Shown in pieces: positions 8,225 through 57,760 of a DNA stretch of 64,000 bases. Made by a program: the position numbers and the translations under genes. The notes beneath the pieces were generated by a model. That model was not told where the DNA came from. It saw only the letters and a list, made by a program, of their open reading frames with translations, and searched no databases. The stretch is taken from contig CM121341.1 of NCBI GenBank assembly GCA_051530055.1, positions 6,798,784 to 6,862,783 of the forward strand. The letters are read 5' to 3'. This stretch comes from Neoechinorhynchus agilis (Eukaryota; Animalia; Acanthocephala). The first letter of the stretch is position 1, and each line of letters begins with the position of its first letter.

Positions 8225-9255
8225 CTCGAATAAATAATCTGTGTTGTATTGAAGACGACACAATTTTATTAGGATTCTTACGTATTTAATTTTGAAATTG
8301 AGTACGTAATTTGGTCTGTTTTTATTTACTTTTTTATGTACGCGAAGGCCGAAAATTATCAAAAATAAGCCTCAATTGTTTGATAATTCGCTATGAACAC
8401 GGAGGTTTTTTTTAAAAAATCAAGAGGGTTTCAAAATATCTCAATGATTTTGAGTCTAGAGGGTAATTATCATTTTAAGGGTTTTTTATTCGGATTCGAC
8501 CAAAAAACCATTCAGAGCTGCCCTTTGATCGTATTTCGGATCATAAATCTTTGGGACGCATCGGCAATAAATTAGTCAATTTAAAAAAGGACGTATTGGA
8601 GTTGCGAGCTCTCATGTCTTCTGACAATTTGGTCATATTAATTAAACGGTTTTTGTAGAACATCCCTTATTCGGATTTTTCCTTTAGGCGCTCATGCAAT
8701 CGATATCTTGGATCAGAGAAGTGATTGAATCATTACGATTGCGAGCTTGTACATTTCTTCGGATCCTCAGATACCTCCTGTGGGGGGGAGACGATTTTAA
8801 TCAGTGATTTTATCGTTTTCTCATGTCTTCTGACAATTTGGTTATATTAATTAAACGGTTTTTGTAGAACATCCCTTATTCGGCTGATTTGTTGGGCGGA
8901 AGTGATTAAATCGCTTAAATCCCAATAAATCATACGGTTGCGAGTTTTGAACGCATCTGTCCGTATTCTCAGATGTTGGTTTTGAATCCTTTGACCCACT
9001 TAAGCACTAATTTTAGTTCTTCCTCTCGAAATATCACTATAAAATATTTTTTATCAAGCTTCATTATGATCACTGCAACTCCAACTTTATCATCCTGAAC
9101 GATTTTCTCTTGCAAAGGGATTATTTTGTATTCTTACAAAATTGATCTTCAATCGATTGTATTTGCATCAGTCGTCGATGAACGACAAAACGCGAAATCA
9201 AACTCGGATTTTTCCTTCAACAATTTTTTTAGATATTTGTCGATTTTGATCTTAG

Positions 9256-11099
9256 ATGGATCACAAACCAGGAAAAAAGCGATTTCTTGATTCAGTTTCT
9301 AAGGATCTTCGTGAGAATCGAGTAAAACCTCCAGAAAAGAAGCGCCGTCACACAGTTGGTCCCATTCGCCGGGCCAAAAATGTACACCACTCATATACTC
9401 GACTGGACGACTTCACTTCGAGTTCCAAAGAATTTCTTTGCTCGAACGCTGGCGTTTTGTTCACTGCTGTCATTAGCCCACGGCCATCGGCGACGAGACT
9501 TAAACGAAAAGCGAATTTCGCCGATAACAAAGGGTGTTATTTTGACGAATGCGATTTTGATGATTGTAAGACTGTAAAGACGTTCTTTGACAAATACTGC
9601 GATTCACCTTGCGTGTGGCGTACAGTGGATGAACTTAACGAGTTGGTGGAAAAATTAGATTTGGAACCTGTAGTGGAGAAAAATGGGACTGATCCAAGTG
9701 CACTAAAACCCAATGCTTCAACTGTGTCCAATGAATTTGATAAATTAGAGAAGCTTCTTCAAAACTTCGCGGATAGCGCTTCTCTTTGTGATCAAAAGGA
9801 AAACTTACCAGAAACTGAAATCGAATTACAGACGAATGACGAGTCGCTCAGTGCGCTAACGGATAATAGGAAACGGACTAGTATTGATCAAATGATCATC
9901 AATGATGTCGAAATAGAGAAAAAGGTACGAATAAAAGATTTGGACAGTGCGGAGAATGAACGATTAGAGTCCAAGTCGAGGTATTCCGTTGATACGGACG
10001 CCATAAGGAAGAAGTACGAACTTAAAGCACCCAGTATCTCGGCGCCAAAATATGGAGACAAACTCATAGAACTGTTACAAACGAATTCAAAGAGTTCAAT
10101 TCACGATGAGCTTGATAATGAAAAGTTTAAACATCTGAGATTCATGCAAGTTTACGTGGTAGATGTTAAGGTTGGGTTTTCATAGATTACTTTGAGAGAG
10201 CACAACATGAATCTCAGTAATCAGATTTTAAAAGAACTTGAAATAATTATGGTAAAGTTGAATGGTATTAAGCTCATAGATATACCGAATGACTCCTTTC
10301 AAATCTGTAAGCGGGAACTTCCATTTTACGAACAAACGATCGAGAGCATCAAAATACGCGAGCGAGCGTCGTTAATGGCCAAAAAATTATTTTCACCTTG
10401 GAAATTGACATCGATTGGTTCTTTAGGAAAATTTACAATTTCCTCAGACAATTCTATTGCTTCACTGAACATTGAAACACGTAACAAAGTGGGAACGGAC
10501 TACTTGGATACAAACTTCGAGATTCTGTCTTGCTCAATCGAATTTAACTTAAATGAATTTGATACGTACACTAAGAACGCGTTCAATACTTTCATAGATA
10601 AATCAGGAATTTATGATGTTTTATCCGAACCTCAAGTTAGCGTGAAAGATGTTCAACGTGTTATATTAGAAGTTGACAACGCTTTTCGAAATACCAAGAT
10701 GTTCGTTTCATCGGTCTACGAAAGTTGCAATAAGACAAAATTTGTAAGAATTCTAGAAGATGAACACTGGATCGATATTCTTTTTCGAATAGATAATTAC
10801 TCGTTTGTTTCGGTTCAGTTTGCACTGTCTTCAAGGAAAGATAAAGTGTTTGATTCGGGCATCGTCAAGATCATCGATCTTACTTTAAGGTGAATTCCTT
10901 TGTCGTTTGCGCCTTCTTGTTGTTAAATGCACACCATTCACTATTTAGGTACAATTGGGTTAATGGACTAAAAAAGAAATTAATCGATCTGATCGATGAA
11001 GAAATAAACCGAATTGACGAGTTAGTTTCTATTGATCAAATTGTTTTGCGTGTTGGATCGATCTTGAAGGCCAACGTTAGTGGTACTGGTGATCTTTAA
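9256..11099 (+). CDS. ~590-aa, 3-exon protein with a coiled coil and a C-terminal region resembling the KNL1/Spc105 tandem RWD domain (tentative)
   Basis: ORFs 9256-10185, 10192-10893 and 10890-11099 join through short GT-AG introns. PWKLTSIG..FTISSDNSIASLNI, VQRVILEVDNAFRNTKMF and IDILF..FVSVQFALS loosely parallel the KNL1 C-terminus. The CDS is well supported; the family call is weak. Confidence 0.55.
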
Positions 11100-32000: not shown

Positions 32001-32732
32001 TTTTGGACAAAATTATAAGATTTGATTTTTCAGCGAACCAGGACAGCAGGTAATGATTTGAGAGGTTCCATTAAATATCAATATTTGCATGAATGGCCTA
32101 AATATGGCGTTTTATTAAAATAATTAGTAAACGTCGTCAAGAGAAAATCCTCCGGGATGATAGAGTTGGAGATTTGGTGAATCGTGCGAGAAAGCCTCGC
32201 CTATTTAGTCATTGTTTTTCAAGTTATAAAATATTTTCTATAAGGTTTAATTATGATTATCACATCTCCAACCTAAATAAAAACTATATTCTGCCAAAGT
32301 AATATTGAAAATTTTTTGCACTTAATCAAGCAGGAATGTTTAAAAATTCAATACTGATAAGAAAACCAAAACCGATGCATTAAAGCTTTTCGAATGAGTG
32401 GGATTAAAAAAGCTGATAAAAGTCCTCTCTTATCTGGCATTAAAAAACGTGCATCATAGATTACCTCTGATAGTTTTTGTTTATAAACCTCTTCGTCGAG
32501 TTGAGCGTCCAGAGTAAATTTATAGGCTATCTTGTAATCAATCACGGTGACGAATGCCTTTTATGAAGATTGATACCAAGAAAATCTTCAGCGGTCTTAC
32601 CGTGCTAAATGCGCGTCCGAAGCGAATAATGGTAAAGTTCGACAATGAGTCCGGGGAATATCTGTCCGTTGTCCATAAAGTGCCGATTCCTGCTCCAAAA
32701 AGAAACAATCCGCGTCGGCTAATAAAACGCAT
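29045..32732 (-). CDS. ADCK1: AarF-domain (UbiB) atypical kinase ADCK1, multi-exon
   Basis: LCLRNRGLFIKFGQ, PIAAASLAQVHRA...VAVKIQHP, ELDFISEA, VLVMEFVDG, GFVHCDPHPGN, LLDHALYQ, GRTWDSV, LLLLKTNRLL. One unexplained in-frame interruption at 30677-30724. Confidence 0.93.
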
Positions 32733-33332
32733 CTAAAAATAAAAGATATTTCGTTTTCTAGATCAATCAATTATGTAGCTGAATTAGAAAATGCAATTAT
32801 TTTTTGTTTATTAAAAAAATCATTGGAAATTGTGCGGTAAAGCATAGAGCGCAACACCGGAATTTGAGTAAAAAAATCCGACAGCATTTTCCCCATCTAA
32901 TCTAGAAAAAAGTTTAGGGCTGATTCGAACTTCACAATCAATAGTGATTTGTTTCCATACATATATATTTCAACAGTTATCGTACCTCATTGAGACATTG
33001 AAAGGAGTATCTTGTAATAATGAACTATATTGCCACGGGAGTGCATGAGTGTTTGTTTACCATCTCGACATATGATCAGAAGATCGAAATTCTTTAAAAT
33101 GGGTTGCTGGGCTTCTTTTTTTTGTTATAAACACAGAGAGAACTGCTATTTAAAAGTACAATGTGCCTTACTCAACAAAAGTCAAACACAAATGAGATGT
33201 GAGATAAAAAGGACCAATATTGTTCAAAGCGATACGTGCGATTTTCAGCGAGAACATTTCGTTTCTCAAAATCCGTACCTGACCTATTGTTTATCATTGA
33301 TTCGCTTCACCAAAAACAAACGACTAGTCCAT

Positions 33333-34692
33333 TTATTCATTTTCTCTTTGTTGATTAATGATGATCGTATTGCCCAAATTCGCAATAGCAGCGGCCGATT
33401 CGAGTAATCTCTGGACGGAAGCAGTGTTAGCGACCCGGCTGCCACCCACGTCAAGAGCAACACGAGCAGCAGCAACACCGACCGCCCGTCCATTCGGACT
33501 CCGTGGTCTGATGGACTCTATTCGTTCTGTAGTGCCGGTCATCGTTGAAAGACCACTATTTACTCCACAAAACTGTGCGGCATATTCACGGCTATTAAAA
33601 TGAGTATTAGAGACTTGTTCGCCGACAGTTACCCATCCTGGTCTTATATCTTGATCAGAAGCAAACAGATGAAGTCGTCTTCTTCCTAGACAGAAGCGTT
33701 CAATCACTCCAAAGATCTCATGTGGCATACGGTCGCTTTGTTCACTTATGAGTACATCAATGTCGATATTTGCATGGATGAAATCGTCGTCAGTTCCTCT
33801 TCTAACCGTCCCTCGAATGCCCATAAGGCAATGCTCTTTGGTTGGTTGAAAAACGTTTCCAATGAGACCTCCACTGCTTATGCTCGGCGTTGACAAGCGT
33901 TTGTTCGTTTTAATCCAGCAAATGTCTTCACACCGACGGAATCCCCATTTACGGAGACACTCTCGTCCTTCGTCCAGACCAACGCCTCCTCCTAGGCCGC
34001 ACCAGAGAAATACAAAAGATCGAGGAGCTGCAAGTTGATCGATAGGCAGATTCATGACTTCATTCCAAGTCCATGATTTTAAAGTAATCACCGATGAGAA
34101 TACAGGAGGTCGAAGAAGGACAACGTCGAATCTATTGAGCTCAGATGAAGGTATTAATGGAGCTTGAAGAACTTGACAAAATGGGAACGTCCGCATGTTT
34201 TCTATTGAGATAGAAAGCATTATAGAAGAAGAAGAAATAATGCTCTTATATCTAGCACACATGAACATAAGCAGCGGGACTATTGGTCATAGCCACGTGT
34301 TCATCTTTAAGCCTGAACAATTCCGCGAGTTTAGGGTGGTCTTTGAACCTCTTTGAAGGATCCTCAGCTTCACGGATGTAGTTCTGCGGTCGTTTTCCAG
34401 TGTTCACAAAATGAGTGGAGTAATCATTGAATATTCCTTCTTCGTCCTCGTCGCCGAAATCGGCGATTTCATCAATTAAACGAAAATCGTTCGATAAGCT
34501 CCTACGTAAATTCTCAAAACATTCGGCACGAAGGATATTTTCACATGGCCGACTAGTTGACATAACTGGTTCGTCCTTAGATGGCACATGACGGCTTCGA
34601 TGCAATTTGAACTCCTTTAAAATCTTCCTTCGCTTACATGAACGCCGATAAATTCTATCAAAAACCTGAACCGAAACACTAGGCTTTGTCAT
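33333..34692 (-). CDS. METTL14: m6A methyltransferase non-catalytic subunit METTL14, 2 exons
   Basis: [116 protein letters not shown]. Confidence 0.96.
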
Positions 34693-35519
34693 CTCAGAGT
34701 GAACAAAAACAACAATCATATCCGCCAGTTACTTAGGTTCTTCCGTGTTTTTTAAACTTTGAACACTACACTTGTAAACAACCTATGAAAGAAAACAACC
34801 TATTTATGTTTTTTATTTGTCGATAGGAGAAAATAAATGAAATTAAAATTTTATTGGATATTTCGGTCCACTATCTAGGATCTTCTTCAACAATTATAAA
34901 TTGATGGACAGATCTAGTCTATTAGATTAATTTACGATCGCTGAAGAAGATCCGAGATAGTGGATCGAAATATTCAATAAAATCTTAATTTCATTTTCTC
35001 CTATCAACAAATAACAATGAATTATCTTTTCAGCAAACCTATTTATGAACAGTGTTCAATCTTCTGATTCATTGTTGTCGGTGTTTTCATAAGCGACCTA
35101 AATGAAGCAAATTATCAAACAATTGATTTATTTGATAATTTTCACTCTTCGCGTAGTCTATCCAAAATGCAATCAAGAAACACTCAATTTGGTTTATCCC
35201 ATGGGATCCTCAGATTGAGTGTGTAATCCGCTTTGTTGCTCACAAATCAATTATTCGATAATTCGCTATATAAAGTGTTTTTGTAGAATATCCTTTAGTC
35301 GGCGTTTTCCCTTTTAGGCACACATCCAATCGATATTTTGGATTTTAAATGGTATATGTTAATTTTTTACTGGCAAAAGCGAACTCAGATCTATCATAGG
35401 AGCAATTTTTAGGCTGAAGGTCAATCAATCGTTAATCTCTCATAACGTTTTTTTATTGATGTGAATTATTTTAGCACTTTCGGTGGTCGAATTTTATGTT
35501 TTACATCAGAGAAGTCCTT

Positions 35520-39400: not shown

Positions 39401-41019
39401 GCCACACTCCTACTTTCAGCCGACTCCTACTGAGAAGAAAAAACTCAAGACAATTGAGAATCGTTTATGTTAATCGAACGACCCAGATTGAATGTAGGTG
39501 TAAGCTAAGAGTTAAAAAAGACGTCAAATGTTCAGATCTTGAGAAACATGGAAAGGATGGAGTATATTCGTATGTTTGTAACCGGACATGCGACGCCCGA
39601 AAGCCATGTGGACGACACCGGTGCCAGGAAAAATGTTGTTTAATCAGTGAGCACATTTGTCTCCTTGAATGTGGTCGATTGTTGAAGTGCAAAAAGCATA
39701 ATTGTCAAGATTTGTGTCATGCGGGTCCATGTAAGAGTCAAAGAAAAGTTTTGGGTTGAACTTTTTTTAACTTAACTCTGGCTCATTAAGCGATGTTTGG
39801 TGGCTACATTCGACGACTGGACTTGCGAATGTGGTCAGACCGTGGTACAGGCTCCGATTGTTTGTGGTCAAGAAATGCCAATGTGCCCAAATCCATGTAC
39901 TCGGAAACACGAATGCGACCATCCGGTTCGACACAACTGCCACTCGGACCCTAAGTGTCCCAAGTGCACTTTTCTCGTCGATAAGAAGTGCAAATGCGGT
40001 CGAAATGTAAGGCGTTCTCGTGTTTAAAAATCTAAATATTCGACTTTTTCCCATTAAGGAGATGAAGAACATTCCTTGTTTTTTGCCGTCCGTGAGTTGT
40101 GGAGATGTATGCGGACGAATGTTAGCTTGTCAAGTGCATTCGTGCCACAAGACTTGTCATACGGTCAGTTTTTGTAATTGTGAAAGAAGTTCAATGTCGA
40201 AAAACTAGGGACCATGCGAAAAGGACGGAGAGAAATGCACACAAAAGTGTATTAGATTACGAATTCAGTGCGGTCATCCGTGTGGCGCACAGTGTCATGG
40301 AAATGAATCAGACTGCCCGGTCTCCGAGTGTCAAACTGAAATTCTTTTAAAATGCGAATGCGGACGATTAAAGCAGATCGCCCGATGCGGTATAAAGAAC
40401 CAAAAAACGGATAATATCGAGGTTGAGATAGACAAAATGTAAGTATTCTGAATCTATTAGAAAAACAACAACATCATTTGTTCTTTTTAGATTAGAATGC
40501 GACAAAGAGTGTAAACGACAAAAGAGATTAAAGCAAATTGCGGATGCCTTGAAAGTGGACGTTAACACTAGTGGACTTCCACCTACTGAATATCCAAGCG
40601 AACTTAAGATGCGAGCCATGGAGCTTGGTATGAAATATGTGATTGGAATAGAGGAAAAGATAGCCACACTGGTACACGAGACCATTGAACTTAAGAGTCC
40701 TAGTCGTACGCTCTATTTTGAAGCATGTGGTTGGAAAAAACGGGAGTTTGTCAAAGCCTTAGCCGAATTCTACGGGTGTTCTGGTCTCAGCCAAGGCTGG
40801 AAATCTAATCGGTTCGTAATGATTGATGCGAGATTTGGTGAATGTTATACGCCTACGAGAAGCATCACAGATGCGCTGGAAGCCGATCGACGAATCCCAA
40901 AGCCGGTGGCTATTTTGCCTGAAACCGAACCAAACCTAACAGAACACGGAATCATGGAAAGAACACAATTAGCAAACGTAACTGATGAACTTAATGACAA
41001 CGAACTGAATCAAGATTGA
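36448..41019 (+). CDS. NFX1: NF-X1-type zinc finger protein (RING/PHD, NFX1 repeats, R3H-like C-terminus)
   Basis: LECMICC..IR.EVAVFSCRSCFNVFHLYCAKKW, WRCPACQ, YRCFCGK, many CH.GPCPPC repeats, LECDKECKRQKRLKQIADAL, and an R3H-like tail (IEEKIATLV...REFVKALAEFYG). Confidence 0.95.
36875..37205. repeat. Two-unit intronic tandem repeat ending in a tRNA T-arm-like GGTTCGATTCCC
   Basis: cacaaagaccatttgat...aagcatctgatcttaaa...ttccccgtgagattga...gcccggt.cagggttcgattccc, twice. Confidence 0.75.
37903..38271. mobile_element. hAT-type MITE inserted in NFX1 coding sequence
   Basis: 14-bp perfect TIR cagtggttcccaaa / tttgggaaccactg; 8-bp flanks aattagct / atttagcc (6 of 8 match), consistent with a decayed hAT TSD. 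Confidence 0.85.
38710..38880. repeat. GC-rich dispersed repeat; inverted copy at ~58270-58490
   Basis: ggaggcgctc...gcactcgaagg...aaacctgaccccacccttccagcagcctcgcaa.ccc.tggaacccagcgacc occurs at both loci. Confidence 0.8.
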
Positions 41020-42017: not shown

Positions 42018-42445
42018 TCAATAGCCCAGTTTGACGAAATAGTCACGAAGACTACCAAGATTATTGGCAACAAGTTCTGATTTGACGGTATCATCATGAG
42101 TGGCAATCAAAATACCTAAATTGGAAAAATAGAACGAAAAAAAGGATTGAGTTTTCGAGAACACGTACATGAGTTGGCTTTAAACGCAACCAGTCCAGCG
42201 GCTCCTAGTTTTAGAACGCAGAATTCACCACAAGTCCTAACAGCGATGTATCGGCCATCGCCGACTGTGATTCCATCAGAAATCTTTTCAAAATCACTCG
42301 TTCCTTGAATCAGTAACTGAACTTGGGAACTATCCATCTTAAAGTTTGAACTCTCACACCACGGATTGCCGTCCAGACCATAGATCCCAGCTTGATTTAC
42401 GCCTTGAATCTCCTTTATTTTGTCGATGTACGCTTGCCAACTCAT
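42018..42445 (-). CDS. Profilin, 2 exons (53-nt intron 42168-42116)
   Basis: MSWQAYIDKIKEIQGVNQAGIYGLDGNPW...GITVGDGRYIAVR...CILIATHDDTVKSELVANNLGSLRDYFVKLGY*. Confidence 0.95.
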
Positions 42446-43049
42446 CTTGAAGAAAACAGCAGAATTCGGAGAAGAGACGTCGGTTTCATGGAGTGGCGAG
42501 ATGGGAAAGAATCAAATGGACGAGACTGGGCTTTGACGTCTGAGAAATGTGACGAAAACGATTTGGCAGCAAGTTTTCGGGTTTTGAAAGCGAATATTCG
42601 ACGATTTCATTCAAGTGAAATATCATGAGCCTGTTTTTTTTCGTCCTCTTGAAAAACAGAGATCAGTGTTTAAAAACAAGTATGCCGAAAATATTTGTTT
42701 TTCGAACAACAATGTTCAATCTCTCGTTTCTTCAGAGTGAAAACGAAATCCATAGAAATTTTCCCGATCAAAAAAACCCGTCAAAATCCTTCATATTGAC
42801 AGTTGTGCTGCACGATGATTTGTTCGCAAAGTCACCGAATATTCGTTCTTATAATGAGCGATGCACATCTTTTGGTGCTGTATCAAGTTAATGTTTGTTT
42901 CTAAGTGAGGAAATGCATCCCGGGTATTTCTGTAATTCCGCCGTCTCAAGATGCGTCTTGTGTGCTAAATGATATTTACGGAACTGACTTGTAGAGCTGA
43001 GGTGCCTGCTTTGTGTAAGGTATTGCGAATGAGTGTCATACGCGATAGT

Positions 43050-44620
43050 GGAGGAAAAGTGAGATGAAGAGAAGGCTAGACGAGAAAGGATGCGTAAAAT
43101 GGTGGAGAATCATTCGAGTTTCTTAGAACTCGTGGAATGTATCGGCTCTTTGTTTGAACATGTAAACTTTGTATGTTCAGTCATTCAAAAAGTGGGCAGT
43201 TTAGAATGGGGGTTTTATGTGGCTCGGGAACATGAAAGCTTTCTGTTCGTGCAGAAAATTGAGATTCAAACAAAAGAAATGATCGATAGGAGTTCAGCTC
43301 ATACTTCTAAAGTTATCCGGCTAAGGATCATCACATCTTCAACTATATCTTCCTGAAGGATTTTCTCTCTCTCTCTCGATGATTAGTTTATTTGGAGATG
43401 TGATGATCAAAATCCCGGGTATAGAACATATTGAGAAATACTTCGCGATGCAAAAAATTGAGATTCAAACAAAAGAAATGATCGATAAGGGTTCAGCTCA
43501 TACCTTTAAAGTTATCCGGCTAAGAATCATGATCACCACATCTTCAGCTCTATCTTCCTGAAGGATTTTCTCTCTCTCTCGATGATTAGTTTATTTGGAG
43601 ATGTGGTGATCAAAATCCCGGGTATAGAACATATTGAGAAATTCTCAAATGCGAATTGTTACACACTCGAGTTTTATTGAACTCTTCATTGCAAATTTTC
43701 AAGGTCTCAGCCTCCTTCTGAAGCATTGTCTAGGCTGAGGCCTTCAAAAAATTGCAATAAAGAGTTCAATAAAACTCGAGTGTGTAACAATTCGCCATTG
43801 AGAATACACATCCACTCGAAGGTACAATTGGATAGAATATTGAGAAATACTTCGCGAGGAATCCTCGTTTTTTCAGTCATCTAAAAAACGGTTTTATAGT
43901 TGTTTTTTATGTGGCTCGGGAACGTGAAGGCTTTCTCTTGGTGCAGAAAGTGTAAATTCAAACAAAAGAAATGATCGATAGGAGTTCAGCTCATACTTCT
44001 AAAGTTATCCGGTTAAGGATCATGATAATCACATCTTCAACTCTATCTTCCTGAAGGATTTTCTCTCTCTCAATGATTAGTTTATTTGGAGATTTGATGA
44101 TCAAAATCCAGGATAGAACATATTGAGAAATACTTCGCGATGCAAAAAATTGAGATTCAAACAAAAGAAATGATCGATAGGAGTTCAGCTCATACTTCTA
44201 AAGTTATCCGGCTAAGGATCGTGATCCCCAAATCTCCAAGTCCATTTTCCTGAAGGATTTTCTCTCTCTCGATGATTAGTTTATTTGGAGATGTGATGAT
44301 CAAAATCCCGGGTATAAAATATTGAGAAATACTTTGCGCGAAATCCTTGCCTCAACAATAATTTAAAAAGGGTTTCAGTTGTTTTTGTGTGCCTCGGGTA
44401 AATAAAAGCTTTCTGTTGGTGCAGAAAGGTGAGATTCGAACTATAGCAATGATAGCTACAAGTTCAGTTCATACCTTTAAAGTTTTTCGGTTGAATATTA
44501 TGATCACCACTTTTCCAACTCTATGATGCCGAAGGATTGTATATTGGTGATCAATAAAATATATTTTATCCGTATCATAATGGTCATCACATTTCCAACT
44601 CTATTTTCCCGAATGATTTT
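43050..44620. repeat. Degenerate tandem array of the TOM40-intron satellite family (reverse orientation), interrupted by a hairpin MITE at 43641-43805
   Basis: Repeats of gagattcaaacaaaagaaatgatcgataggagttcagctcatacttctaaagttatccgg and cctgaaggattttctctctctcgatgattagtttatttggagat. Confidence 0.9.
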
Positions 44621-45064: not shown

Positions 45065-48000
45065 CTAGGGATCAACAAATGAAACCAAAATGTATCTAGT
45101 TCCATTCGTAGTTTGCAGTCCTTCGTGATAGTGTGTCAGTCTTCCTGGATGCATCAAAGCCCATCCCATCTTTAGATCCTTTATTACCGTGTTGTATCGA
45201 ATGAACTTGACGCCACCTCCTTGATAATCGATATTTGGTCGATTAAGAGCGATATTGATTGTATAGGTAGATGCATCATGGTGCGGACGTAGACGGTCTT
45301 GTCCATCTTTATGGTACCTTACAACAAAACTCAAAGGAGCGTTGGGCTCCGCCTTTTCATATCCTTTAAAAAGCTTGATTTGCATCGGACGAACAATGGT
45401 TTTTAGTATGTCGTGCCAGGTTTCCGCGAACCCAATTTGAGAGAAGTGGATATCGTCAGTTGGTACATTCTCGTAGCCCCCAGGAATCCGTTGATCAGTA
45501 TGCTTTCCGCCCGACCATAAGTCTGGATGAGCTTCAACTGTGGCCACTAAGTCAGTGCAAAACTTCTCGGAAAACAGGGGAAACCAAAACACATCCGGTG
45601 CTGGTTGTTGATTTCGATCGGCTTTCAGGTGAGCTGCAAATTCAGTGTGGATGTATTTTTCGGCCCATATCTAACACGTATCATAGAATGTTTCTTTAAC
45701 CGAAAATATGTCGAACCTTTTGATTTGATTTAAATTCATAAAGGTCCGGTCGAACTAGAGACGTATTGTAATTACTAACGTCAACCAATGTTCCGTAAGT
45801 GTCATAATTTGTCACGAACATGTGAATTCCCTAAATCGAAGGACAACTATCTTAAGTAGTCTGTAAAAACAGCAAGATGGTCGATTGTGAAAACGGTTTG
45901 ATCAGTAGTTCAATAACGCATTGCACTAAGCATCGAATTTAAAGGTCTCATTGAATCTTAGTAAGATCAATTTTTGTAAGTAAAATAACCTTTAGATTAA
46001 AGGTCTTTCCTCAAAGATATAAAAGGTGACATCTCTCGACATTTTCTAATCCACTCTATAAAAATAAGATATTTTATGAAAGATATATTTGTCATTAAAG
46101 TAAACAATTGCCTAATTAAAACTCACGTGAAATTTTGAGCGTGAATAATCGATAATTTGATCGGGCGTGCTAAGTCTCTTCCTCCACGATTATTCCACAA
46201 AAATATCTCTTGCTATGCTTGAAAGCGCTGGAGTAATTTTAAACAGGTTTACCTTTTTCCTTAATTCATGCGTGATACCAATATCGAAATCCACCCTTGA
46301 GTCTACTCCATCGATTTTAAGTAAGGTATCTTTACGAAACGCAACAAATTCGGATACAAATGGAACATTCCATAGACCACTGATTTAAGAAAGGAGTAAG
46401 TTTAACGGTGGTTATTAGTTACAAACCTCGTTTTGTTATCAACAATGTCAAGATAGTCTTGGGATCGAACATAGTATCCGGCATCATCCACGTCGCCCCA
46501 AAAATTACTCCAATACGTCCCCGCCCGTGTCATTAAAGGTGCTATCACTGATCTATTGATAAAAGCGCAGCGATTTAAATCTATATGAAGACAAATACTT
46601 ACTTATTCCATGAAATCAAATCTTTTAAAGTCTTTGGATTTTCGACGTGAACCGTTGATTCAAGTTGGACGTAAAATTCTATGTCAAACTTTCGTGCTTC
46701 CATGCTTAAATGGATATTATTAGCTTGAGGAGGCAATGAACGATGGAGTCTCCTTTATAGACATCCTTTAAAGTATTGTAACCATTTAAAATTTAACAAC
46801 GAACAAAAGCTAATCGCGACAACATGAAAAAGCCACTTAAAAGAATTCTATTTAATTTACATTCTCTGAAAAGTTCGTTGAATGTGAGATTTGAAAAGTA
46901 TGCAAAGTTTTCTAGAAAAAGTTGTATTAGTTCTTAAGTAGAACCGAATGAAACTACTGATTTCAGAGAATCACTATAAATTATGAAAACGTGAAATGTA
47001 ATCAAGTTCGTTCACACCTTACATTGCAGCGTTTTTGGCCTGATTTTCGAGGATATCATCTTGGGATGGTAAATACTTAATCTTCCCATAAGTATTTTTG
47101 TGAGCAGAAATAAAATCTTCGACTGTTTGATTGTGAAAATCGATCTAAATGCTAATTTTAGTTTCGCTCACGGGTCTTGCCAACGGTATACGCACTGCGT
47201 TATGTACAAACAGATATATTTTGTCTTTTGGGTAGTCGATATTTGTAAGTTTCTCGAAAAATTCATTAAGAAATGGCGTTGGCTGTTCAACGAAGACACC
47301 AATTGATACTAGTGGCAGATCTTCAAACAAATCGAGCTGAGTGTAACATCGATTGCAGAGACCGATCGAAGGTAGATAGTTCGAAACTTGATTGATTACG
47401 ATCTAAGTATGAGATGGTGATAGAGATCATTGAGGTGAAAAATAAACGCACGCTGTCATCTTCGGAGAAGAGGACCGATGAGGATGAAATGCTAGTGAGT
47501 GGTCGACTCAATTTTGTAAATATTGCGCTTTCATCGTCGACTTTTATCGTATCCTAAACCGAAAAAAGAGAGATGTCGCTTTAATTTTCCGGTTGGATAT
47601 TTAACCTTGGCTAAAGCCATCCGTATTGCATCGATTTGATTTGTGTTAAATGGCACGATGAGGGATTATATAGGGAGACCTGTATAAAAAAATTTGATTT
47701 GGTCCCGTGTTTTGGCCAATTGCTAGAAGATAATTGAAACGCTGTAAATTGTTTTAATTGGGTTGCAATTTTTTATTATCTTTCTGGGGATTAAATATCA
47801 CACACACAAAATGTTATTCGGATAAAATTTTGGCATGATCAAACGGATTGATTAAATGCGATTTTGAAAGCAGGGCACTGCTTTTTTATTTATTTATAAG
47901 AATTTCTTAATTAAACAAAAAGGAAAATGAAAACTTAATATATGTTAGTCGAGCCACGAGTGCATCAACAAATTACGGTTTGGTAAAACTTTTCCCGTCA

Positions 48001-49183
48001 GATTCTTCACTGTACCATTTACTATTAGTGAAAAATAGTTCTTTTAAAATGCTCCTTTTACCAATGACAACTGTCGGAGATTCTTTAATTGTTTTCAGAC
48101 TGCATGTCCCCTCGCGAGAACAGTTAGGCGAGGGGATTACAACAGGAGCAGTCAGTTTATCCAGGTTAAAGAGTAGCTGCTGACCACTCGAAGGAATCAA
48201 AAAGTTGAAACCTTTCAGTAAAATGATAAATTCCTTCTTTTTATCACTTTTATCATTTTTAAGGCAACTCTTGATCCATTCGTTCCCATAATTGTTTTCG
48301 TTGATGAAAGTCTAAACACAAAAGTTGTTAGAGAACGCTCATTTAAGCGAAGCAGCTTGTCGTTTGAATATTTCTCGGTAAAACAATCACGGATCGTAAA
48401 GGAAAATTCGATTCCCAAATTTTTGTTTAACCTTTAAGTTTCCCCATTGAACATTGCACACAACAGAATCGTCCAACTAATCAGGTGTTTTTACGTTATT
48501 TTAATCGAACTAATTGGTTTTTGTAAAGAATTTGTTCACGGATATATGTATTTTTTGTGATGAGAACAGATTGATTTGTCGATATGTGAGGAGGTACTGG
48601 GGAATGTGATTGGAAATATTGATTAGAAGCCTTCATCACTCGGTAAATGATTTTTTCGATTAAAGACGTTATGTGAACCTCGTTTTATGGTAATCATCAG
48701 TTTGTTAGTTAGCGTTGATCGAGGTTCGAAACGTCTTTAATCGAAAAAATCATTTACCGAGTGATGAAGGCTTCTAAACAATAATTACAGAGATTGATTT
48801 ATTATCGTCAATATTTCGTTCGTCTCATCGGACGTCTTCAGGTTATTTGCTAGTGTTCACGGCTTCAGATCGAGTGAAGTCCGACGAGACGGACGAAATA
48901 TTGGGAATTGATGTGTTTCTCTTAGGTCAAAATACCTCGAGTGGTCTATAGTAGAAATGCAAGTGAAATTGGAGACAAACCTTAGCATCATAACCATTCA
49001 TTGCTAAAGTAGATTCCAATCTTCGTTGGTTATCAAACTCTGTTTGATTTGCGCATATTAAAACGCTGATTGACTGCGTAGCTAAAAACTCGATTTCTTA
49101 ACAAAAGAGCATATAAAAGAGAGAGAGTAAATACCTGCAATTATTGCGTAAAAAACCAATATCGATCCAATCAAATAGCTCAT
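45065..49183 (-). CDS. PLOD paralog A: intact Fe(II)/2OG lysyl hydroxylase domain, degenerate N-terminal glycosyltransferase domain
   Basis: Signal peptide [17 protein letters not shown]; [19 protein letters not shown]; [20 protein letters not shown]; [16 protein letters not shown]...[12 protein letters not shown]...[10 protein letters not shown]. At least one middle exon (~47600) not resolved. Confidence 0.9.
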
Positions 49184-49252
49184 CTAGAAATAGACGGTCA
49201 CTTATTTTACCGGAGCTCAATGAATAATTATTTTTATTTCACAATGGAATCA

Positions 49253-52200
49253 TTAGGGATCAATGAATGACACTAAAATGTACCGCGTTCCTTCGGTAAT
49301 TTTTAGACCTTCATGGATGTGGGTAAGTCTACCCGGAAACATGACCGGCCATCCAATTCTTGTGTCCACCAATGAACAATTATATCGAATAAATTTAACA
49401 CCACCAGCCTTATAATCAATACCGGCTCGATTTAGAGCAATATCCAGGGTATATGTAGAAGCGTCGTGGTGTGCTCTGAGATGATCTTGAATAGAAAGAT
49501 CGTACCTAACCACAAATGTCAAAGGAGCTTGTGGTGGATCTTTATAATATCCTAAAAATATCCTCATCTGCAAGGGCTGAATAAATTGTTTAAGAAAATG
49601 GTGCCAATGATCCTGCCATCCGATTTGCGTCATGTGGATATCGTCAGTCGGTACGTTCTCATATCCTCCTGGAATGCGACCGTCTGTGTGTTTTCCCAGT
49701 GACCATTGCCCAGTGTTGTTGACGGTCTCGATCATCTCCCTTGCAAATCTTTCCGATAATAGGGGATACCAAAACACATCTGAGCAAGGCTGAATCTTGA
49801 AATTGAAGAAAAATGACTTAAAATCTATTGACCCTACCTGTTGAATAAAGAACTTATCGGTCTCAATCTCCACACCAACCAAATCGCTCAAATATTCTCG
49901 TCTCCACTGCTCCAAAGGAATCTCTTTTTGTTTCGTATACTCTAAGAATTTTGGATGTAAATATCGTACTTTCCAATCTTCGAGATTACTAAAAATTTCA
50001 TAAAGTTCAGGGTGAAGCGCTGTTGAGTTGAAACTTTCAGGATCGACCAAATGACCGTAACTGTGGAGATTAGTCGCCCACATGAAAATTCCAGAATCTC
50101 GCAAATATTTTGTAAGTTCCATGTCTTCATCGATTTCCTTCTCTTTCCACCCACCTGCCTTTTCAAGGCGGTCAACGATTGCTCGTTTTAAAAGAATAAA
50201 CGATGAAATATGTGGAACATTCCACATACCCACTCGTTCATCTTCAACGATCGATACATAATCGCTTGATCGCAAATAATATCCGTTTTCGTCAATCGCT
50301 CCCCAAAAGTTTGAGAATAGTCGACTGGGTCTTCGCAGTATAGGAGCAATCACCGATCGATTAAGTCCTATGAGGAAGGCAAGCGTCTCAGGTTCATCAA
50401 TGTGGGCAGTAGCGTCCATTATAAGAAGATAGTCACAGTTCATACGTCGACATGATTTGATAAAATGGTTCCTGGCGTCCTTTTGGTTCAATTTCTTGTC
50501 TCCATGATGTTCATATAGTCGATAGGATTTTTTTAGTTTACCAGCTTCGAAAAAATGTTTGATTTGTTTGTCATGAATTGGAGCACTATTATGAATTACG
50601 AGACCAATTTTGGATTGTGGGTAAGAAATGCTAGTCAGTTTTGTAAGAAATTCTTCAAAGAAGGGCGTTTCGGATTCAGCGAGGACGCCAATTAAGACCG
50701 ATGGCCATTTGTTTCGCTATGATAGGAACACATAATTTCAATGAAGATTAAAGTGTCCTACTCACGTTCACAGCTTCCAAGTCAAATACATTATTTTCGC
50801 AGTGACGGCAACCGAAATTAGGAATCCAGCGTTTTGCCAAATAATTGGAAAATTGGTTGAACAGTAGCTGCACAGGTAAAGCGAAAATAAAGATGGAGAG
50901 AGGTTAAGTTTTGGTTAAAAACTTTTACAAACTAGCGGAGCCATCGATGTGAATTTGAGACGAAAATGATAAAAACGAAAATAAGGGGGAAACTTGAACC
51001 GATTATTTTGAAATGGTGAATGAGGAAAAGTTTAAGATAGTTTGAACCAGAGAAGTGTTGAATGATTAATAATTGGAAAGGATGAATGGAGAAAAATGGA
51101 TATAAAAAGATTAGAAGTTCGAAAGGAGGGGAAGGAGGGAAAGTTTAAGATAGCTTGAACCAGAGAAGCGTTGAATGATTAATAATTGGAAAGGATGAAT
51201 AGAGAAAAATGGATATAAAAAGGTTAGAAGTTCGAAAGGAGGGGAAGGAGGGGAAGTTTAAGATAGTTTGAACCAGAGAAGTGTTGAATGATTAATAATT
51301 GGAAAGGATGAATAGAGAAAAATGGATATAAAAAGGTTAGAATTTCGAAAGGAGGGGAAGGAGGGAAAGTTTAAAGGAAATAAAAACAAAAAAAGGAGAC
51401 AATGAAAATGATAAGAGAATGGGAAGTTGTGGAATGAGAGGAGGATAAGAAAGCGAGTGTAGTAAGCGCATCGAAAAGGAGGAATAGAGAAAATTTGTAA
51501 AGTGAAAATGATCCTAAAGAAGGAAACTAGAATCGGAATGAGCGTATTGTGGAGCACGAAACGGGTTAAAGGATCAAAATGAGAATAGTGAACATTGTTC
51601 ATGGGAGAAGATGATCGAAATTGCAGCAGCAGAAAGGTCGTCCGGTCTTTTAGTTTTGACGGGTAGAAGGTTGGTAAAGAGCAATACAATAAACAATTGG
51701 ACGAAGAGAATTTTTGTACAAATATTTAAATTAAAAAATTATAAGACTGTACAGAATTATGCCGAACCTACCTTAGAAGGGCCATTTCCATGCAAAATGG
51801 ACGGACGAGTTCCAGATTGGAAATTGGTAAGAATTGAGGTAGCGTTTTCAAACGTGATCTGCAAATCTTTTTGAGCTCCATTCAGGCTTTGAAAGATCTC
51901 AGACTTTGTATCGAGTCCAACGTCCTTCTGTCCCTTACGTTTCGCCGCATTAAGATAGAAATTTGTATACGCCAACTGATCATCATCAGCGTCCTTAATC
52001 GACAATGAGTTTATTAAATTTATAACATCATCTTTATAGCCCATGAAAAGGCCAGAGTTTAGGAACCGACTTGCGTTCTCGGAAACTTCTGGATATTTTG
52101 CCTAAATAGAATAGAGTTACGACAATTTCAAACGAGAATCTTTATATTACTTCGAGCGTTTTGTCTGGCCAGCAGAATGTTTCTGCGGAAAAGATAATGC

Positions 52201-53231
52201 GTTTGTCGAATGTGACGAATTTTCTAACAATTTCATCGGGTTCATCGTTGAATATCACATCGTATCTGAGGAACTGTTTAACAAAAAAAACTCTATTTGT
52301 TCTGATAAACATACCCGTCAGTGTAGAGAACGAGAGTCTCATTCACGGATTTAATCTCATTTAAATGCCGTTTGAGAATGTTTATTTTCTGACCACCTCC
52401 AACGCTCGTTTTGACATCACCTCCTTTCCATTTTTCATTCAAACCAAAAACCTATTTTAGACAACAAAAAATTTAAAGTCTCTCACAATACTTTATATTT
52501 TTTTGGCGGAAAAAAATGAACTAAATCCGATTGTTTTCGGAGACACAATATTGTGTCAAAATGTCGATATTTGAGGAAAAAGTTATTGTTTAGTTAAGTC
52601 TTCATCAAGCGGTAAATAATTTTTTGCACTAAAGACGTTCTGTGAAACTTTACGAACTTGTTTTTCGAGCATTTCAATTGATTGAAAACCGCTTTTATTA
52701 CCGTCTAAAGCTTGTTTTCAAAAAAATCAAAAAGGAACCATTCAATCGGCGTAAACTCGGAAATAAATATTAATTTTTAATATTTAAAAGCATACAAGAA
52801 AACTGGTGATGAATAGGACACAAGGTTCGCAGAACGTCTTTAGTGCAAAAAAGTATTTACCTAGTGATGAAGACTTCCCTAAACAATAATAAGATTGTAA
52901 ATTAGAATCAAGTCGATTGGGATACGCCTTGCCGAAAACAATAGGATTTAATGAAAATTCCTTCAATTTTTCCGCCATATAAAAAAATGAACAATGTTCA
53001 AAAACCCAATACCTTATAGTCGTAATCATAGAAGTCAAGACTCTCTCTAAGCAATTCGAACCCGTCCGTTTCATCTGTCGCAACAGTGAAAACAAGAAGG
53101 TCTTTGCCGTCTGAACATGTTCAATTAATATTTTCTTAGTACAAAATAACTTAGCACTTACTTAAAATCCCGTTTACGAGCGAACAACAGGCGAACAGTA
53201 GCACAACAACAACATTGGTTGTCAAGTTCAT
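49253..53231 (-). CDS. PLOD paralog B: canonical multifunctional lysyl hydroxylase/glycosyltransferase (LH3-like)
   Basis: LLVFTVATDETDG, WKGGDVKTSVGGGQKINIL, YTDGYDVIF, FSAETFCWPD, RFLNSGLFMG, DADDDQLAY, ILHGNGPSK, RAHHDASTY, PGRLTHIHEG, RYILVSFIDP*. Confidence 0.95.
51028..51372. repeat. Three ~113-bp purine-rich tandem units in a PLOD-B intron
   Basis: aagtttaagatagtttgaaccagagaagtgttgaatgattaataattggaaaggatgaat...gaaaggaggggaaggaggg, three times. Confidence 0.95.
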
Positions 53232-53617
53232 TTAAAAAGAAGACGGCAGTGTACGGTTTCTAAAACGCAAAAATCCGGACGTAAAAGCGATATTCCTTCA
53301 GAACAAGTTTCTGTGTATCTACATCGCAGTATCCTCCCATCTTCCTTCGTTATAGACAAGAGACGCTATATTCCCCCTCCCGTAGACGCCAGAGAATAAG
53401 TCGTAGAATAGAAGAGACATTAAGACCACGGAACACTACTCGATTCAGCATAATTTTTACAATGTATGCGCACTGCTTATGCTGAGAATTTGCTAGCTGG
53501 GCCAACCAAAAGCAAGGCTGTATTGGCGCAAAAAATCAACATAATTTTTTCTTTTGGCTGCCTGGATGCATGTCGAACCTTGGGTTTTGTGAAAATAAAC
53601 ACATTGAAACAAACATA

Positions 53618-54425
53618 GAAATGATTTGTGGACTTTGCTATAAAATACAAGGGGAAAATCTTCTCTCTTTTAACGCGACAAAAAATTGCCAGAGAAATGC
53701 TAAAGTTCCAACTTTCTGCGCGATGATTTTTGGATAAAAAAAACATAACGGCCGACTTTTAATAAAAGGGTTGAAACTCCCTTTTTCAGAAATGATTTGT
53801 GGACTTTTCTATCAAATACAAGGGGAAAATCTTCTATCTTTTAACACGACAAAAAATTGCCAGAGAAATGCTAAAGTTCGAACTTTCTGCGCGATGATTT
53901 TTGGATAAAAAACACAACGGCCGACTTTTAATAAAAGGGTTGAAACTCCCTTTTTCAGAAATGATTTGTGGACTTTGCTATCAAATACAAGGGGAAAATC
54001 TTCTCTCTTTTAACACGATCAAAAAATTGCCAGAGAAATGCTAAAGTTCGAACTTTCTGCGCGATGATTTTTGGATAAAAAACATAACGGCCGACTTTCA
54101 ATTCAAGGGTTGAAACTCCCTTTTCAGAAATGATTTGTGGACTTTTCTATCAAATACAAGGGGAAAATCTTCTCTCTTTTAACGCGACAAAAATTGCCAA
54201 AGAAATGCTTAAGTTCGAACTTTCTGCGCGATGATTTTTGGATAAAAAACACAACGGCCGACTTTTAATAAAAGGGTTGAAACTCCCTTTTTCAAAAATG
54301 ATTTGTGGACTTTTCTATCAAATACAAGGGGAAAATCTTCTCTCTTTTAACACGACAAAAAATTGCCAAAGAAATGCTAAAGTTCGAACTTTCTGCGCGA
54401 TGATTTTTGGATAAAAAAACATAAC
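53618..54425. repeat. Tandem satellite, ~5 units of ~170 bp, upstream of PLOD-B
   Basis: gaaatgatttgtggacttt...atacaaggggaaaatcttc...ttctgcgcgatgatttttggataaaaa...gggttgaaactccctttt repeats. Confidence 0.96.
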
Positions 54426-54699
54426 GGTCGCCTAATTCTACTTTTAATCGAAGGGTGTATTTTTCTCTTAATTCGACCAAATACAAATTCCCTTTGCCCT
54501 TGCTAATAATTGTAATTCTCACGTCCAAATAGAATTTCAGTTTCAATTAGCGATGCTTGATTCAGAAATAGATTTACCTTGAAAATTTTCGGCCTTTTCG
54601 TTGGCCTTCTTTAGTCAATCTATTTCTTAATCAAACATCGCTAATTGAAACTGAAACTATAATGAATAATTTCTTTCCAAATAGAATTAATCGAAGAAA

Positions 54700-57119: not shown

Positions 57120-57760
57120 CGGTGGCAGCGTTCCCACGCTGGATCGCCAGACTCAAGTTTTGTCGCAAGAAAGTGATTGACTGCGGCTCGCGATACGTCG
57201 CCCAGTTCAATCACGAATTCCGTTGCGGCCTTTCCAAATGCCCCACTAAGTCTCGACTCCGAGGGGCAGGAACAAAAACTGAGAGGCTAATTCATGATAC
57301 TTCACGGTCTTACGTTCCTCCGCTCTCGTTGCCGCGGCTCCTGCGCCTAATTTAGCGGTCGTTATATTGCTGTTTGCCAGCGTATCGACGCATGTTGCGT
57401 CCCATATAAGGCATCCGCCACGTGACCAGGGAAAGACCGTTACCCCGTCAGGACGTTTCCCTTCTGAGCGGCAGAGATTATTTGGCTCCAGGATGCAGGG
57501 CACATGGATCGATCTCAGCGCTCGACTTATGATAGCATTGATTTCAGCATGACGGGGAAAACGTCCTGCGGACCGCTTACATGAGAGACCGTGTTGTCCC
57601 GACACCACATCGACATTTATGAGCGACGCAAATGTCCATTCCGAATCTGAAGGTCTCATCATCCAGTAAAGTGCCCAAATTTGAGGATGGTATAGCATCA
57701 AGCCAGGCTCCAGATTCTTTGGTTGAACAAGCAGCGAGACGAATTCTAGCCATTTGATTC
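57120..57760 (-). mobile_element. Best-preserved 5'-truncated CRE-like RLE retrotransposon
   Basis: HGLSCKRSAGRFPRHAEIN...EPNNLCRSEGKRPDGVTVFPWSRGGCLIWDATCVDTLA...AEERKTVKY...FLPLGVET...RGNAATV. Confidence 0.9.

Follow-up and report, generated by a model that had tools for sequence, protein, structure and literature searches.

We examined a 64,000-nucleotide (nt) window of the genome of the acanthocephalan Neoechinorhynchus agilis (GCA_051530055.1, CM121341.1), in whose numbering all positions are given. The minus strand of this window carries two neighbouring genes of the lysyl hydroxylase (PLOD) family, PLOD-B upstream and PLOD-A downstream, and 69 nt separate the stop codon of the first from the start codon of the second. 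Profile matches and phylogeny identify the pair as ancient tandem lysyl hydroxylase paralogs, and the short interval between them combines a polyadenylation signal with a candidate splice acceptor. Protein matches, among them a METTL14 (P0121) with 100% identity, agree with this species assignment. The N. agilis genome is compact, with 46.2 Mb and 13,655 predicted genes. Its assembly combined Illumina and Oxford Nanopore reads in MaSuRCA, the public gene calls were made with BRAKER, and 74 public mRNA-Seq libraries (PRJNA1223661) and a Trinity transcriptome (Zenodo 10.5281/zenodo.17199078) are available.

Results

The PLOD-B and PLOD-A genes

PLOD-B occupies 49253..53231 on the minus strand, starts with the ATG at 53231 and is annotated with a coding sequence (CDS) of 755 amino acids (aa) that includes GT-domain and lysyl hydroxylase (LH) domain exons. 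Its first exon (53231-53162, minus strand) encodes the signal peptide and is followed by a 51-nt intron; other introns of the gene measure 49 nt. By tblastn and hidden Markov model (HMM) comparison the gene is collinear with PLOD residues 17-720. The last exon (49253..50716, minus strand; open reading frame (ORF) 49253..50491) runs for ~487 codons without an intron and matches a profile of 73 full-length PLODs with 643.8 bits over HMM positions 278-720. The frame ends in ATT GAT CCC TAA, with the stop at 49255-49253 (minus strand), and this gives the conserved family C-terminus ...VSFIDP. The public annotation likewise closes the 755-aa product, listed as GT_PLOD/2OG-oxygenase, at 49253. The GT domain (PF25342) of PLOD-B has the acidic DxD-type site (LYTDGYDVIF), and the LH domain has RAHHDAS...THIHEG together with a match to Pfam PF03171 (2OG-FeII_Oxy). 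Tandem repeats lie both upstream of the gene (169 nt x 4.8 at 53617-54427, ~390 nt before its ATG) and within its large intron (113 nt x 3.2 at 51018-51374), where the coding strand of the repeat region is pyrimidine-rich, with a GC skew of 0.25 over 50-52 kb. An acceptor-like gcgttttAG is found 28 nt before the PLOD-B ATG.

PLOD-A opens at 49183 with an exon (49135..49183, minus strand) that encodes a hydrophobic, signal-peptide-like stretch and ends in phase 1. Intron 1 (49082..49134, minus strand; 53 nt, GTATTT...TTTTAG) is followed by exon 2 (48981..49081, minus strand), which matches PLOD-B (LLVFTVATDETDGFELLRESLDFYDYDYK / GKDLLVFTVATDETDGFELLRESLDFYDYDYK) and ends in phase 0 after YDxK. 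Both the positions and the phases of these introns, phase 1 after the signal peptide and phase 0 after YDxK, are equal in the two genes. Exon 3 as annotated (47973..48311, minus strand) adds 112 codons and a TAA at 47975-47973. The exon model 49183-49135, 49081-48981 and 48311-47976 is 100% identical, across all 162 residues, to the public protein, whose CDS opens at the same ATG at 49183. Exon 3 matches the PLOD profile at positions 73-125 (3.2 bits, E 0.0013 for one target) and by BLASTP is collinear with residues 37-139 of a full-length PLOD (P0090, E 0.27). Consistent with this order, the three best profile hits within 49183-47400 fall at positions 30-50 (weak), 75-127 and 193-213. Codon usage prefers the predicted frame in all three exons, with exon 3 at about the 96th percentile of random windows. 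A search of 1.84 billion representative proteins with the 162-aa N-terminal product recovered only the product itself.

The remainder of PLOD-A is annotated as a separate 506-aa gene (P0039, ACOME3_001594; 45065..47620, minus strand), which covers PLOD from about residue 146-189 to the C-terminus, has 8 introns and has no signal peptide of its own. Its last exon matches the PLOD profile with 354 bits and Pfam PF03171. An initial annotation of this stretch had treated PLOD-A as one gene; the start at 49183 that it gave is real, and the public calls divide what follows into 162-aa (49183..47973) and 506-aa (47620..45065) units. To reach the next homologous exon (acceptor 47554/47553) in frame, exon 3 has only the weak donors GTTGTA, GTAATC, GTTGTC and GTCATT, and every frame of the small exon with the annotated ATG at 47620 is closed by a stop when that exon is entered from the strong acceptor at 47681/47680.

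The PLOD-A GT domain (PF25342) is degenerate, so that membership of the family rests on the accessory and LH domains. In place of the DxD-type site it reads LLKGFNFLI, with KGFN (within 48245-48200, minus strand, in exon 3) at the position equivalent to DGYD of PLOD-B, and the GGD...GGGQK loop is absent. The LH domain retains HxD...H and the Arg (RPHHDAS...THYHEG), and the combination of a degenerate GT site with these retained residues fits a paralog that may be specialised to hydroxylation only. The two genes also contrast in intron content: the last ~487 codons of PLOD-B lie in one exon (50716-49253), and the equivalent region of PLOD-A (47144-45068) is interrupted by six introns, pointing to very different intron loss or gain in the two paralogs.

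Given the complete PLOD-B C-terminus, the signal-peptide exon of PLOD-A and the matching introns, the interval between the genes is a true gene boundary, and the predicted protein features mark 49183 as a genuine PLOD-type gene start. We rejected the possibility that the 69-nt gap is an annotation split of the kind seen in METTL14 (55 nt) and ABC1 (63 nt), since the PLOD-B protein reaches its full C-terminal end and a new signal peptide opens PLOD-A. An in-frame fusion of PLOD-B exon 1 to PLOD-A was also rejected, as a stop arises in exon 2.

The intergenic spacer

The spacer (49184..49252, minus strand, corresponding to 6,847,967-6,848,035 of CM121341.1; TGATTCCATTGTGAAATAAAAATAATTATTCATTGAGCTCCGGTAAAATAAGTGACCGTCTATTTCTAG) consists of 24 A, 10 C, 11 G and 24 T, and has the same boundaries in the public gene calls. 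Its sole canonical poly(A) signal is the AATAAA at 49233..49238 (minus strand), 14 nt past the PLOD-B stop. Three further genes in the window have an AATAAA as well, at +6, +29 and +39 from their stops. Since the signal thus lies 6-39 nt after four stops, that of PLOD-B included, 3' untranslated regions here appear to be short and cleavage of the PLOD-B transcript ~10-30 nt past 49233 is plausible, and this would leave roughly 20-40 nt between the predicted cleavage site and the acceptor. At the downstream end of the spacer, an acceptor-like motif (CCGTCTATTTCTAG; 49184..49197, minus strand) places its AG (49185-49184) flush with the PLOD-A ATG (49183-49181), and 10 of the 12 bases before the AG are pyrimidines. 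Elsewhere in the window, true spacers between same-strand genes measure ~2025, 2619, 600 and 2260 nt, all 600 nt or longer, which makes the 69-nt spacer an outlier.

These results agree with much of the initial annotation. It had described a 69-nt spacer with an AATAAA and an acceptor touching the PLOD-A ATG, in accordance with both the coordinates and the public gene calls; it had named two neighbouring PLOD paralogs, which the profile scores (644 and 354 bits) and the 2OG-FeII_Oxy match in both genes confirm; and it had likened the arrangement to nematode and larvacean operons, a geometry upheld by the 69 nt from stop to ATG. Its estimate of 42-60 nt for local introns holds for a short class of 46-53 nt (14 cases) and misses the long introns of 318, 422, 561 and 669 nt that make the local distribution bimodal. 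Its statement that the only GT..AG pair inside the spacer is ~27 nt long was mistaken: in addition to the 27-nt pair (GT 49210), a 59-nt candidate runs from GT 49242 to AG 49184.

The 25 nt before the two PLOD ATGs (53256-53232 and 49208-49184, minus strand) are weakly similar (CCGTCT.(.)TTT.TA.ATG; shuffle p ~0.01, post hoc), ending in TTTTTAA at PLOD-B and in TTTCTAG at PLOD-A. Local DNA alignment of the two 5' flanks gave no significant similarity.

Acceptor-like motifs flush with other start codons

The same arrangement, a pyrimidine tract and an AG directly abutting the ATG, is present at four further gene starts in the window. On the minus strand these are profilin (42445..42459, ctgttttcttcaAG directly before the ATG, with the true N-terminus MSWQAYIDK), METTL14 (34692..34706, ttgttcactctgAG) and ABC1/ADCK (32732..32746, tcttttatttttAG); on the plus strand, gattttgatcttAG at 9242..9256 abuts the ATG of a 309-codon ORF that is the start of an unannotated gene. 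As a background, the window contains 2133 ATGs, of which 7.3% follow an AG and 1.3% follow an AG preceded by at least 8 pyrimidines in 12 positions. Tract and AG are flush with the ATG in four of seven credible annotated starts (PLOD-A, profilin, METTL14 and ABC1), in addition to the gene at 9256. The corresponding binomial probability is ~8e-4 for the AG alone and ~1e-6 with the tract, and rises to ~0.01 when all 13 annotated starts, split ones included, are counted.

Given that the profilin ATG encodes the canonical MSWQ N-terminus, these sites are not internal exons. A GT is found 46-60 nt upstream only at PLOD-A, and the other sites therefore cannot be put down to short cis introns. A leader joined at the AUG, either in trans or from a distant 5' exon, would be the simplest common explanation, and the motif suggests that many N. 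agilis mRNAs may receive a spliced 5' leader right at the AUG. In the acanthocephalan Pomphorhynchus laevis, a YAG lies 2 nt before the ATG in two of three gene starts (PLOD and METTL14), and in the bdelloid Rotaria the AG is not flush with the ATG in the six gene starts examined.

Age of the gene pair

A neighbour-joining tree of 436 alignment columns unites the P. laevis PLOD with PLOD-B (99%) and places PLOD-A as the sister of these two (90%). PLOD-A and PLOD-B share 48.8% identity, and PLOD-A is equally distant from insects. By this tree the duplication is older than the split from Pomphorhynchus. That so old a pair is still adjacent, and that PLOD-A exons 1-3 remain open and coding-like, suggests constrained linkage. 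The P. laevis PLOD gene spans 35 kb and its contig ends 2 kb beyond, which leaves the downstream neighbour out of view; Rotaria has a single PLOD, with an unrelated gene ~500 nt downstream.

Discussion

A proposed dicistronic transcription unit

These data allow us to propose, tentatively, that co-transcription of PLOD-B and PLOD-A with leader splicing at 49184/49183 is the best explanation of the locus. PLOD-A appears to have no space for a promoter of its own, and RNA polymerase II starting upstream of PLOD-B would read on into it. The PLOD-B mRNA would be cut and polyadenylated some 10-30 nt past the AATAAA at 49238-49233, and the PLOD-A mRNA would acquire its capped 5' end from a short leader spliced to the acceptor at 49184/49183. 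This leader would most likely be trans-spliced and placed directly against the AUG, which presupposes a spliced leader (SL) in the lineage. In its geometry the locus resembles a leader-resolved operon of the tunicate type, with intercistronic regions of tens of bases, and such an arrangement would be expected to couple expression of the two paralogs. We put forward with somewhat less assurance the wider proposal that acanthocephalans trans-splice a leader onto acceptors flush with the AUG, and that PLOD-B/PLOD-A is a leader-resolved dicistronic operon whose linkage predates the eoacanthocephalan/palaeacanthocephalan split. A bolder variant would recognise three cistrons, PLOD-B, the 162-aa unit and the 506-aa unit, the last reached via the strong acceptor at 47681/47680.

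Several observations weigh against this proposal, including some that are taken up below with the alternatives. The statistic for AG flush with ATG draws on 7-8 gene starts and a pyrimidine threshold picked post hoc. The PLOD-A acceptor scores 1.4 with a position weight matrix, inside the range of true acceptors and not distinct from random AGs; the matrix, built from 18 local introns, is noisy, with leave-one-out scores of -2.5 to 9.5. Operon-like spacing occurs at one pair in the window and is not general there, and PLOD-A may be either a single gene of roughly 600-650 aa or a pair of units. With the 23-nt sequence that we take to be the bdelloid leader as query, no match with up to 3 mismatches was found in the window. 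SL genes usually lie elsewhere in a genome, and absence from the window is expected even if a leader exists. An Rfam scan of the entire window returned zero matches, and thus no SL RNA, small nuclear RNA or transfer RNA landmarks. Searches of public proteins with PLOD and METTL14 recovered no transcript-derived proteins from N. agilis or near relatives; the same search with profilin recovered only the annotated N. agilis protein, and the supplementary material of the genome publication, examined for expression of PLOD, yielded nothing. The searchable literature holds no report of trans-splicing, operons or a spliced leader in Acanthocephala, and no leader was found in expressed sequence tags (ESTs) of the monogonont Brachionus.

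Alternative explanations

The best-placed alternative, which we regard as unlikely, is a promoter lying within the 3' end of PLOD-B, in its last exon or 3' untranslated region (UTR), with transcription starting in or just upstream of the spacer. The 5' UTR of PLOD-A would then be very short and unspliced, or its transcript would begin with a short outron removed by trans-splicing, and the AG would be incidental or used only after independent initiation. The compactness of the genome is in keeping with such an arrangement, at the price of a core promoter that must overlap both the PLOD-B coding sequence and its poly(A) site. The A/T-rich run AAATAAAAATAATTATT (49240-49224, minus strand), within which the AATAAA lies, could serve as a TATA-like element with a start site in the spacer: it is ~45-55 nt upstream of the PLOD-A ATG, a plausible distance from TATA through start site to ATG if the 5' UTR is ~15-25 nt long. 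When scanned for TATAAA or TATA, however, the spacer contained neither. The PLOD-B start has no abutting AG (TTTTTAA precedes its ATG), indicating that not every gene here needs one, and the weak 25-nt similarity before both PLOD ATGs might reflect a shared initiation context. An embedded promoter nevertheless leaves the pyrimidine tract and AG at four other gene starts unexplained.

Cis-splicing, or a true dicistronic mRNA, is improbable. Here the acceptor at 49184 would pair with GT 49242, or with the donor of an upstream PLOD-B or leader exon, and ribosomes would reach PLOD-A on a dicistronic or chimeric mRNA through reinitiation or internal entry, an arrangement comparable to that of Drosophila Adh/Adhr. 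The 59-nt candidate intron (49184..49242, minus strand; GTGAAA...TTTCTAG), which shares the acceptor AG at 49184, weakens the argument that no cis intron fits the spacer; its removal would excise the AATAAA and leave 10 nt between the PLOD-B and PLOD-A frames. Its length is close to the local class of 46-53-nt introns, yet exceeds all 14 short introns seen. A closely similar donor, GTTAAA, is annotated locally, but GTGAAA is atypical: among 18 local donors +5 is G in 12 and +6 is T in 11, and the candidate has A at both positions. A splice from the phase 0 donor of PLOD-B exon 2 to the ATG would stay in frame; the last exon of PLOD-B, by contrast, contains no strong donor-like site of the form GT[AG]AG[TAG], and the other genes with an AG flush with the ATG have no matching donor at 46-60 nt. 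Reinitiation after a frame of ~720-755 codons is inefficient in eukaryotes, which also counts against this explanation.

Least probable of the three is that the 5' end of PLOD-A is a fossil, the 162-aa ORF being a duplication relic that is no longer expressed or functional and the 69-nt spacing having no role in expression. The working unit would be the 506-aa gene, which would begin around 47620 or at the strong acceptor 47681/47680 and be driven by a separate promoter within the ~350 nt after 47973. In line with this, exon 3 ends in TAA with only the weak donors leading onward in frame, an AATAAA follows the 162-aa stop at +78/+82, the exon with the annotated ATG is closed in three frames when entered from the acceptor, and the 162 N-terminal residues have lost the DxD equivalent and have no detectable homolog among the representative proteins searched. 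The annotation splits PLOD-A at exactly this point, but as METTL14 and ABC1 are also split, this is weak evidence. The 506-aa product, moreover, has no signal peptide, even though its LH domain keeps HxD...H and the Arg and the product would normally act in the endoplasmic reticulum. Exons 1-3 remain open over 162 codons, with codon bias in the expected frame and splice sites that are canonical and ancestrally placed, whereas neutral decay should have erased them in so old a duplicate; a relic therefore fits poorly.

Annotation and other features of the window

BRAKER often breaks one gene into adjoining models in this window. METTL14 (34692-33333, minus strand) is annotated as 146-aa and 287-aa models with 55 nt between them, and the 146-aa piece matches METTL14 residues ~88-141 (E ~1e-17). 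ABC1/ADCK (32732-29045, minus strand) appears as models of 258 and 246 aa separated by 63 nt across an in-frame TAG, an NFX1-like gene (36448-41019) is in three pieces, and PLOD-A (49183-45065, minus strand) is divided into the 162-aa and 506-aa models described above. Given that single genes are split in this way, gene counts and short 'intergenic' distances taken from the annotation are unreliable.

The in-frame TAG of ABC1/ADCK lies at 30717-30715 (minus strand), between ...IPRVYKDIY and RRCQGFAKGSVVIISSDRVLVMEFVDGY, and family-like sequence continues in the same frame on either side. No convincing canonical intron was seen around it, and the TAG could be a polymorphism or error, the mark of a pseudogene, or part of an odd intron. 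Between PLOD-A and profilin, tandem repeats of ~200 nt x 2 occur twice (43250-43642 and 43956-44338). An ORF of 151 aa at 57246-57701 (minus strand) resembles a fragment of a mobile-element protein.

Significance and comparison with known systems

SL trans-splicing and operons are patchily distributed across animals and their origin is still debated. Acanthocephalans are nested within the rotifers, and among rotifers in this broad sense the bdelloids alone are known to trans-splice. Should the proposal be correct, the PLOD pair would be the first operon described in Syndermata (rotifers and acanthocephalans). It would also be the first sign that Acanthocephala carry out SL trans-splicing, and so extend the process to the parasitic branch. 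It would provide a dated case in which a tandem duplication gave rise to an operon, within a genome reduced to 46 Mb, and acanthocephalan gene models and counts would need re-annotation that takes trans-splicing into account.

The closest likeness in geometry is to the operons of the tunicates Oikopleura dioica and Ciona, where compact genomes leave only tens of bases between same-strand genes, one spacer holds both poly(A) signal and trans-splice acceptor, and the acceptor is near the AUG. The median intercistronic distance is 31-57 bp in Oikopleura and ~1 bp in Ciona, compared with ~100 bp in C. elegans; the ~20-40 nt predicted from cleavage site to acceptor in N. agilis would fall in the Oikopleura range and below the ~100 of C. 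elegans. Tunicates differ in that a single spliced leader and polycistronic precursors have been shown experimentally, whereas both are proposals for the N. agilis pair, which is the one such pair in its window and belongs to Gnathifera rather than Chordata.

Operons of the SL2 type in C. elegans likewise place an AAUAAA before a short intercistronic region, and the 3' splice site that follows has no cis donor. Where trans-splicing is already present, operons can form as intergenic DNA is lost. In C. elegans the region between the cistrons carries a U-rich element and a dedicated SL2 is used. In contrast, the N. agilis spacer is shorter and has no obvious U-rich element beyond the acceptor tract, and no specialised leader is known.

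Among relatives of N. agilis, bdelloid rotifers are the closest with a documented leader, a 23-nt sequence reported on >50% of transcripts (Pouchkina-Stantcheva & Tunnacliffe 2005, as cited in PMC1925144). The Rotaria PLOD gene has an acceptor-like ccttcAG 4 nt before its ATG. Bdelloids differ from N. agilis in that the AG does not abut the ATG in those six Rotaria starts, and operons are stated to be unreported in rotifers. As the monogonont ESTs yielded no leader, trans-splicing in Acanthocephala cannot be assumed. In another gnathiferan, the chaetognath Paraspadella gotoi, trans-splicing is prevalent and 18% of genes lie in operons (spacers <250 bp); the authors of that work regard trans-splicing as independently evolved in each lineage. 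In chaetognaths the leaders have been identified and confirmed with RNA-seq, whereas a leader in N. agilis is a proposal.

A further parallel is the Adh/Adhr pair of Drosophila, tandem paralogs of which Adhr reportedly has no promoter of its own and is expressed by read-through from Adh. As proposed for PLOD-A, the downstream copy of a tandem paralog pair depends on the upstream transcript. Unlike the arrangement proposed here, the Adh/Adhr mRNA stays dicistronic and involves no trans-splicing, whereas the candidate acceptor flush with the PLOD-A AUG points to processing of the N. agilis transcript.

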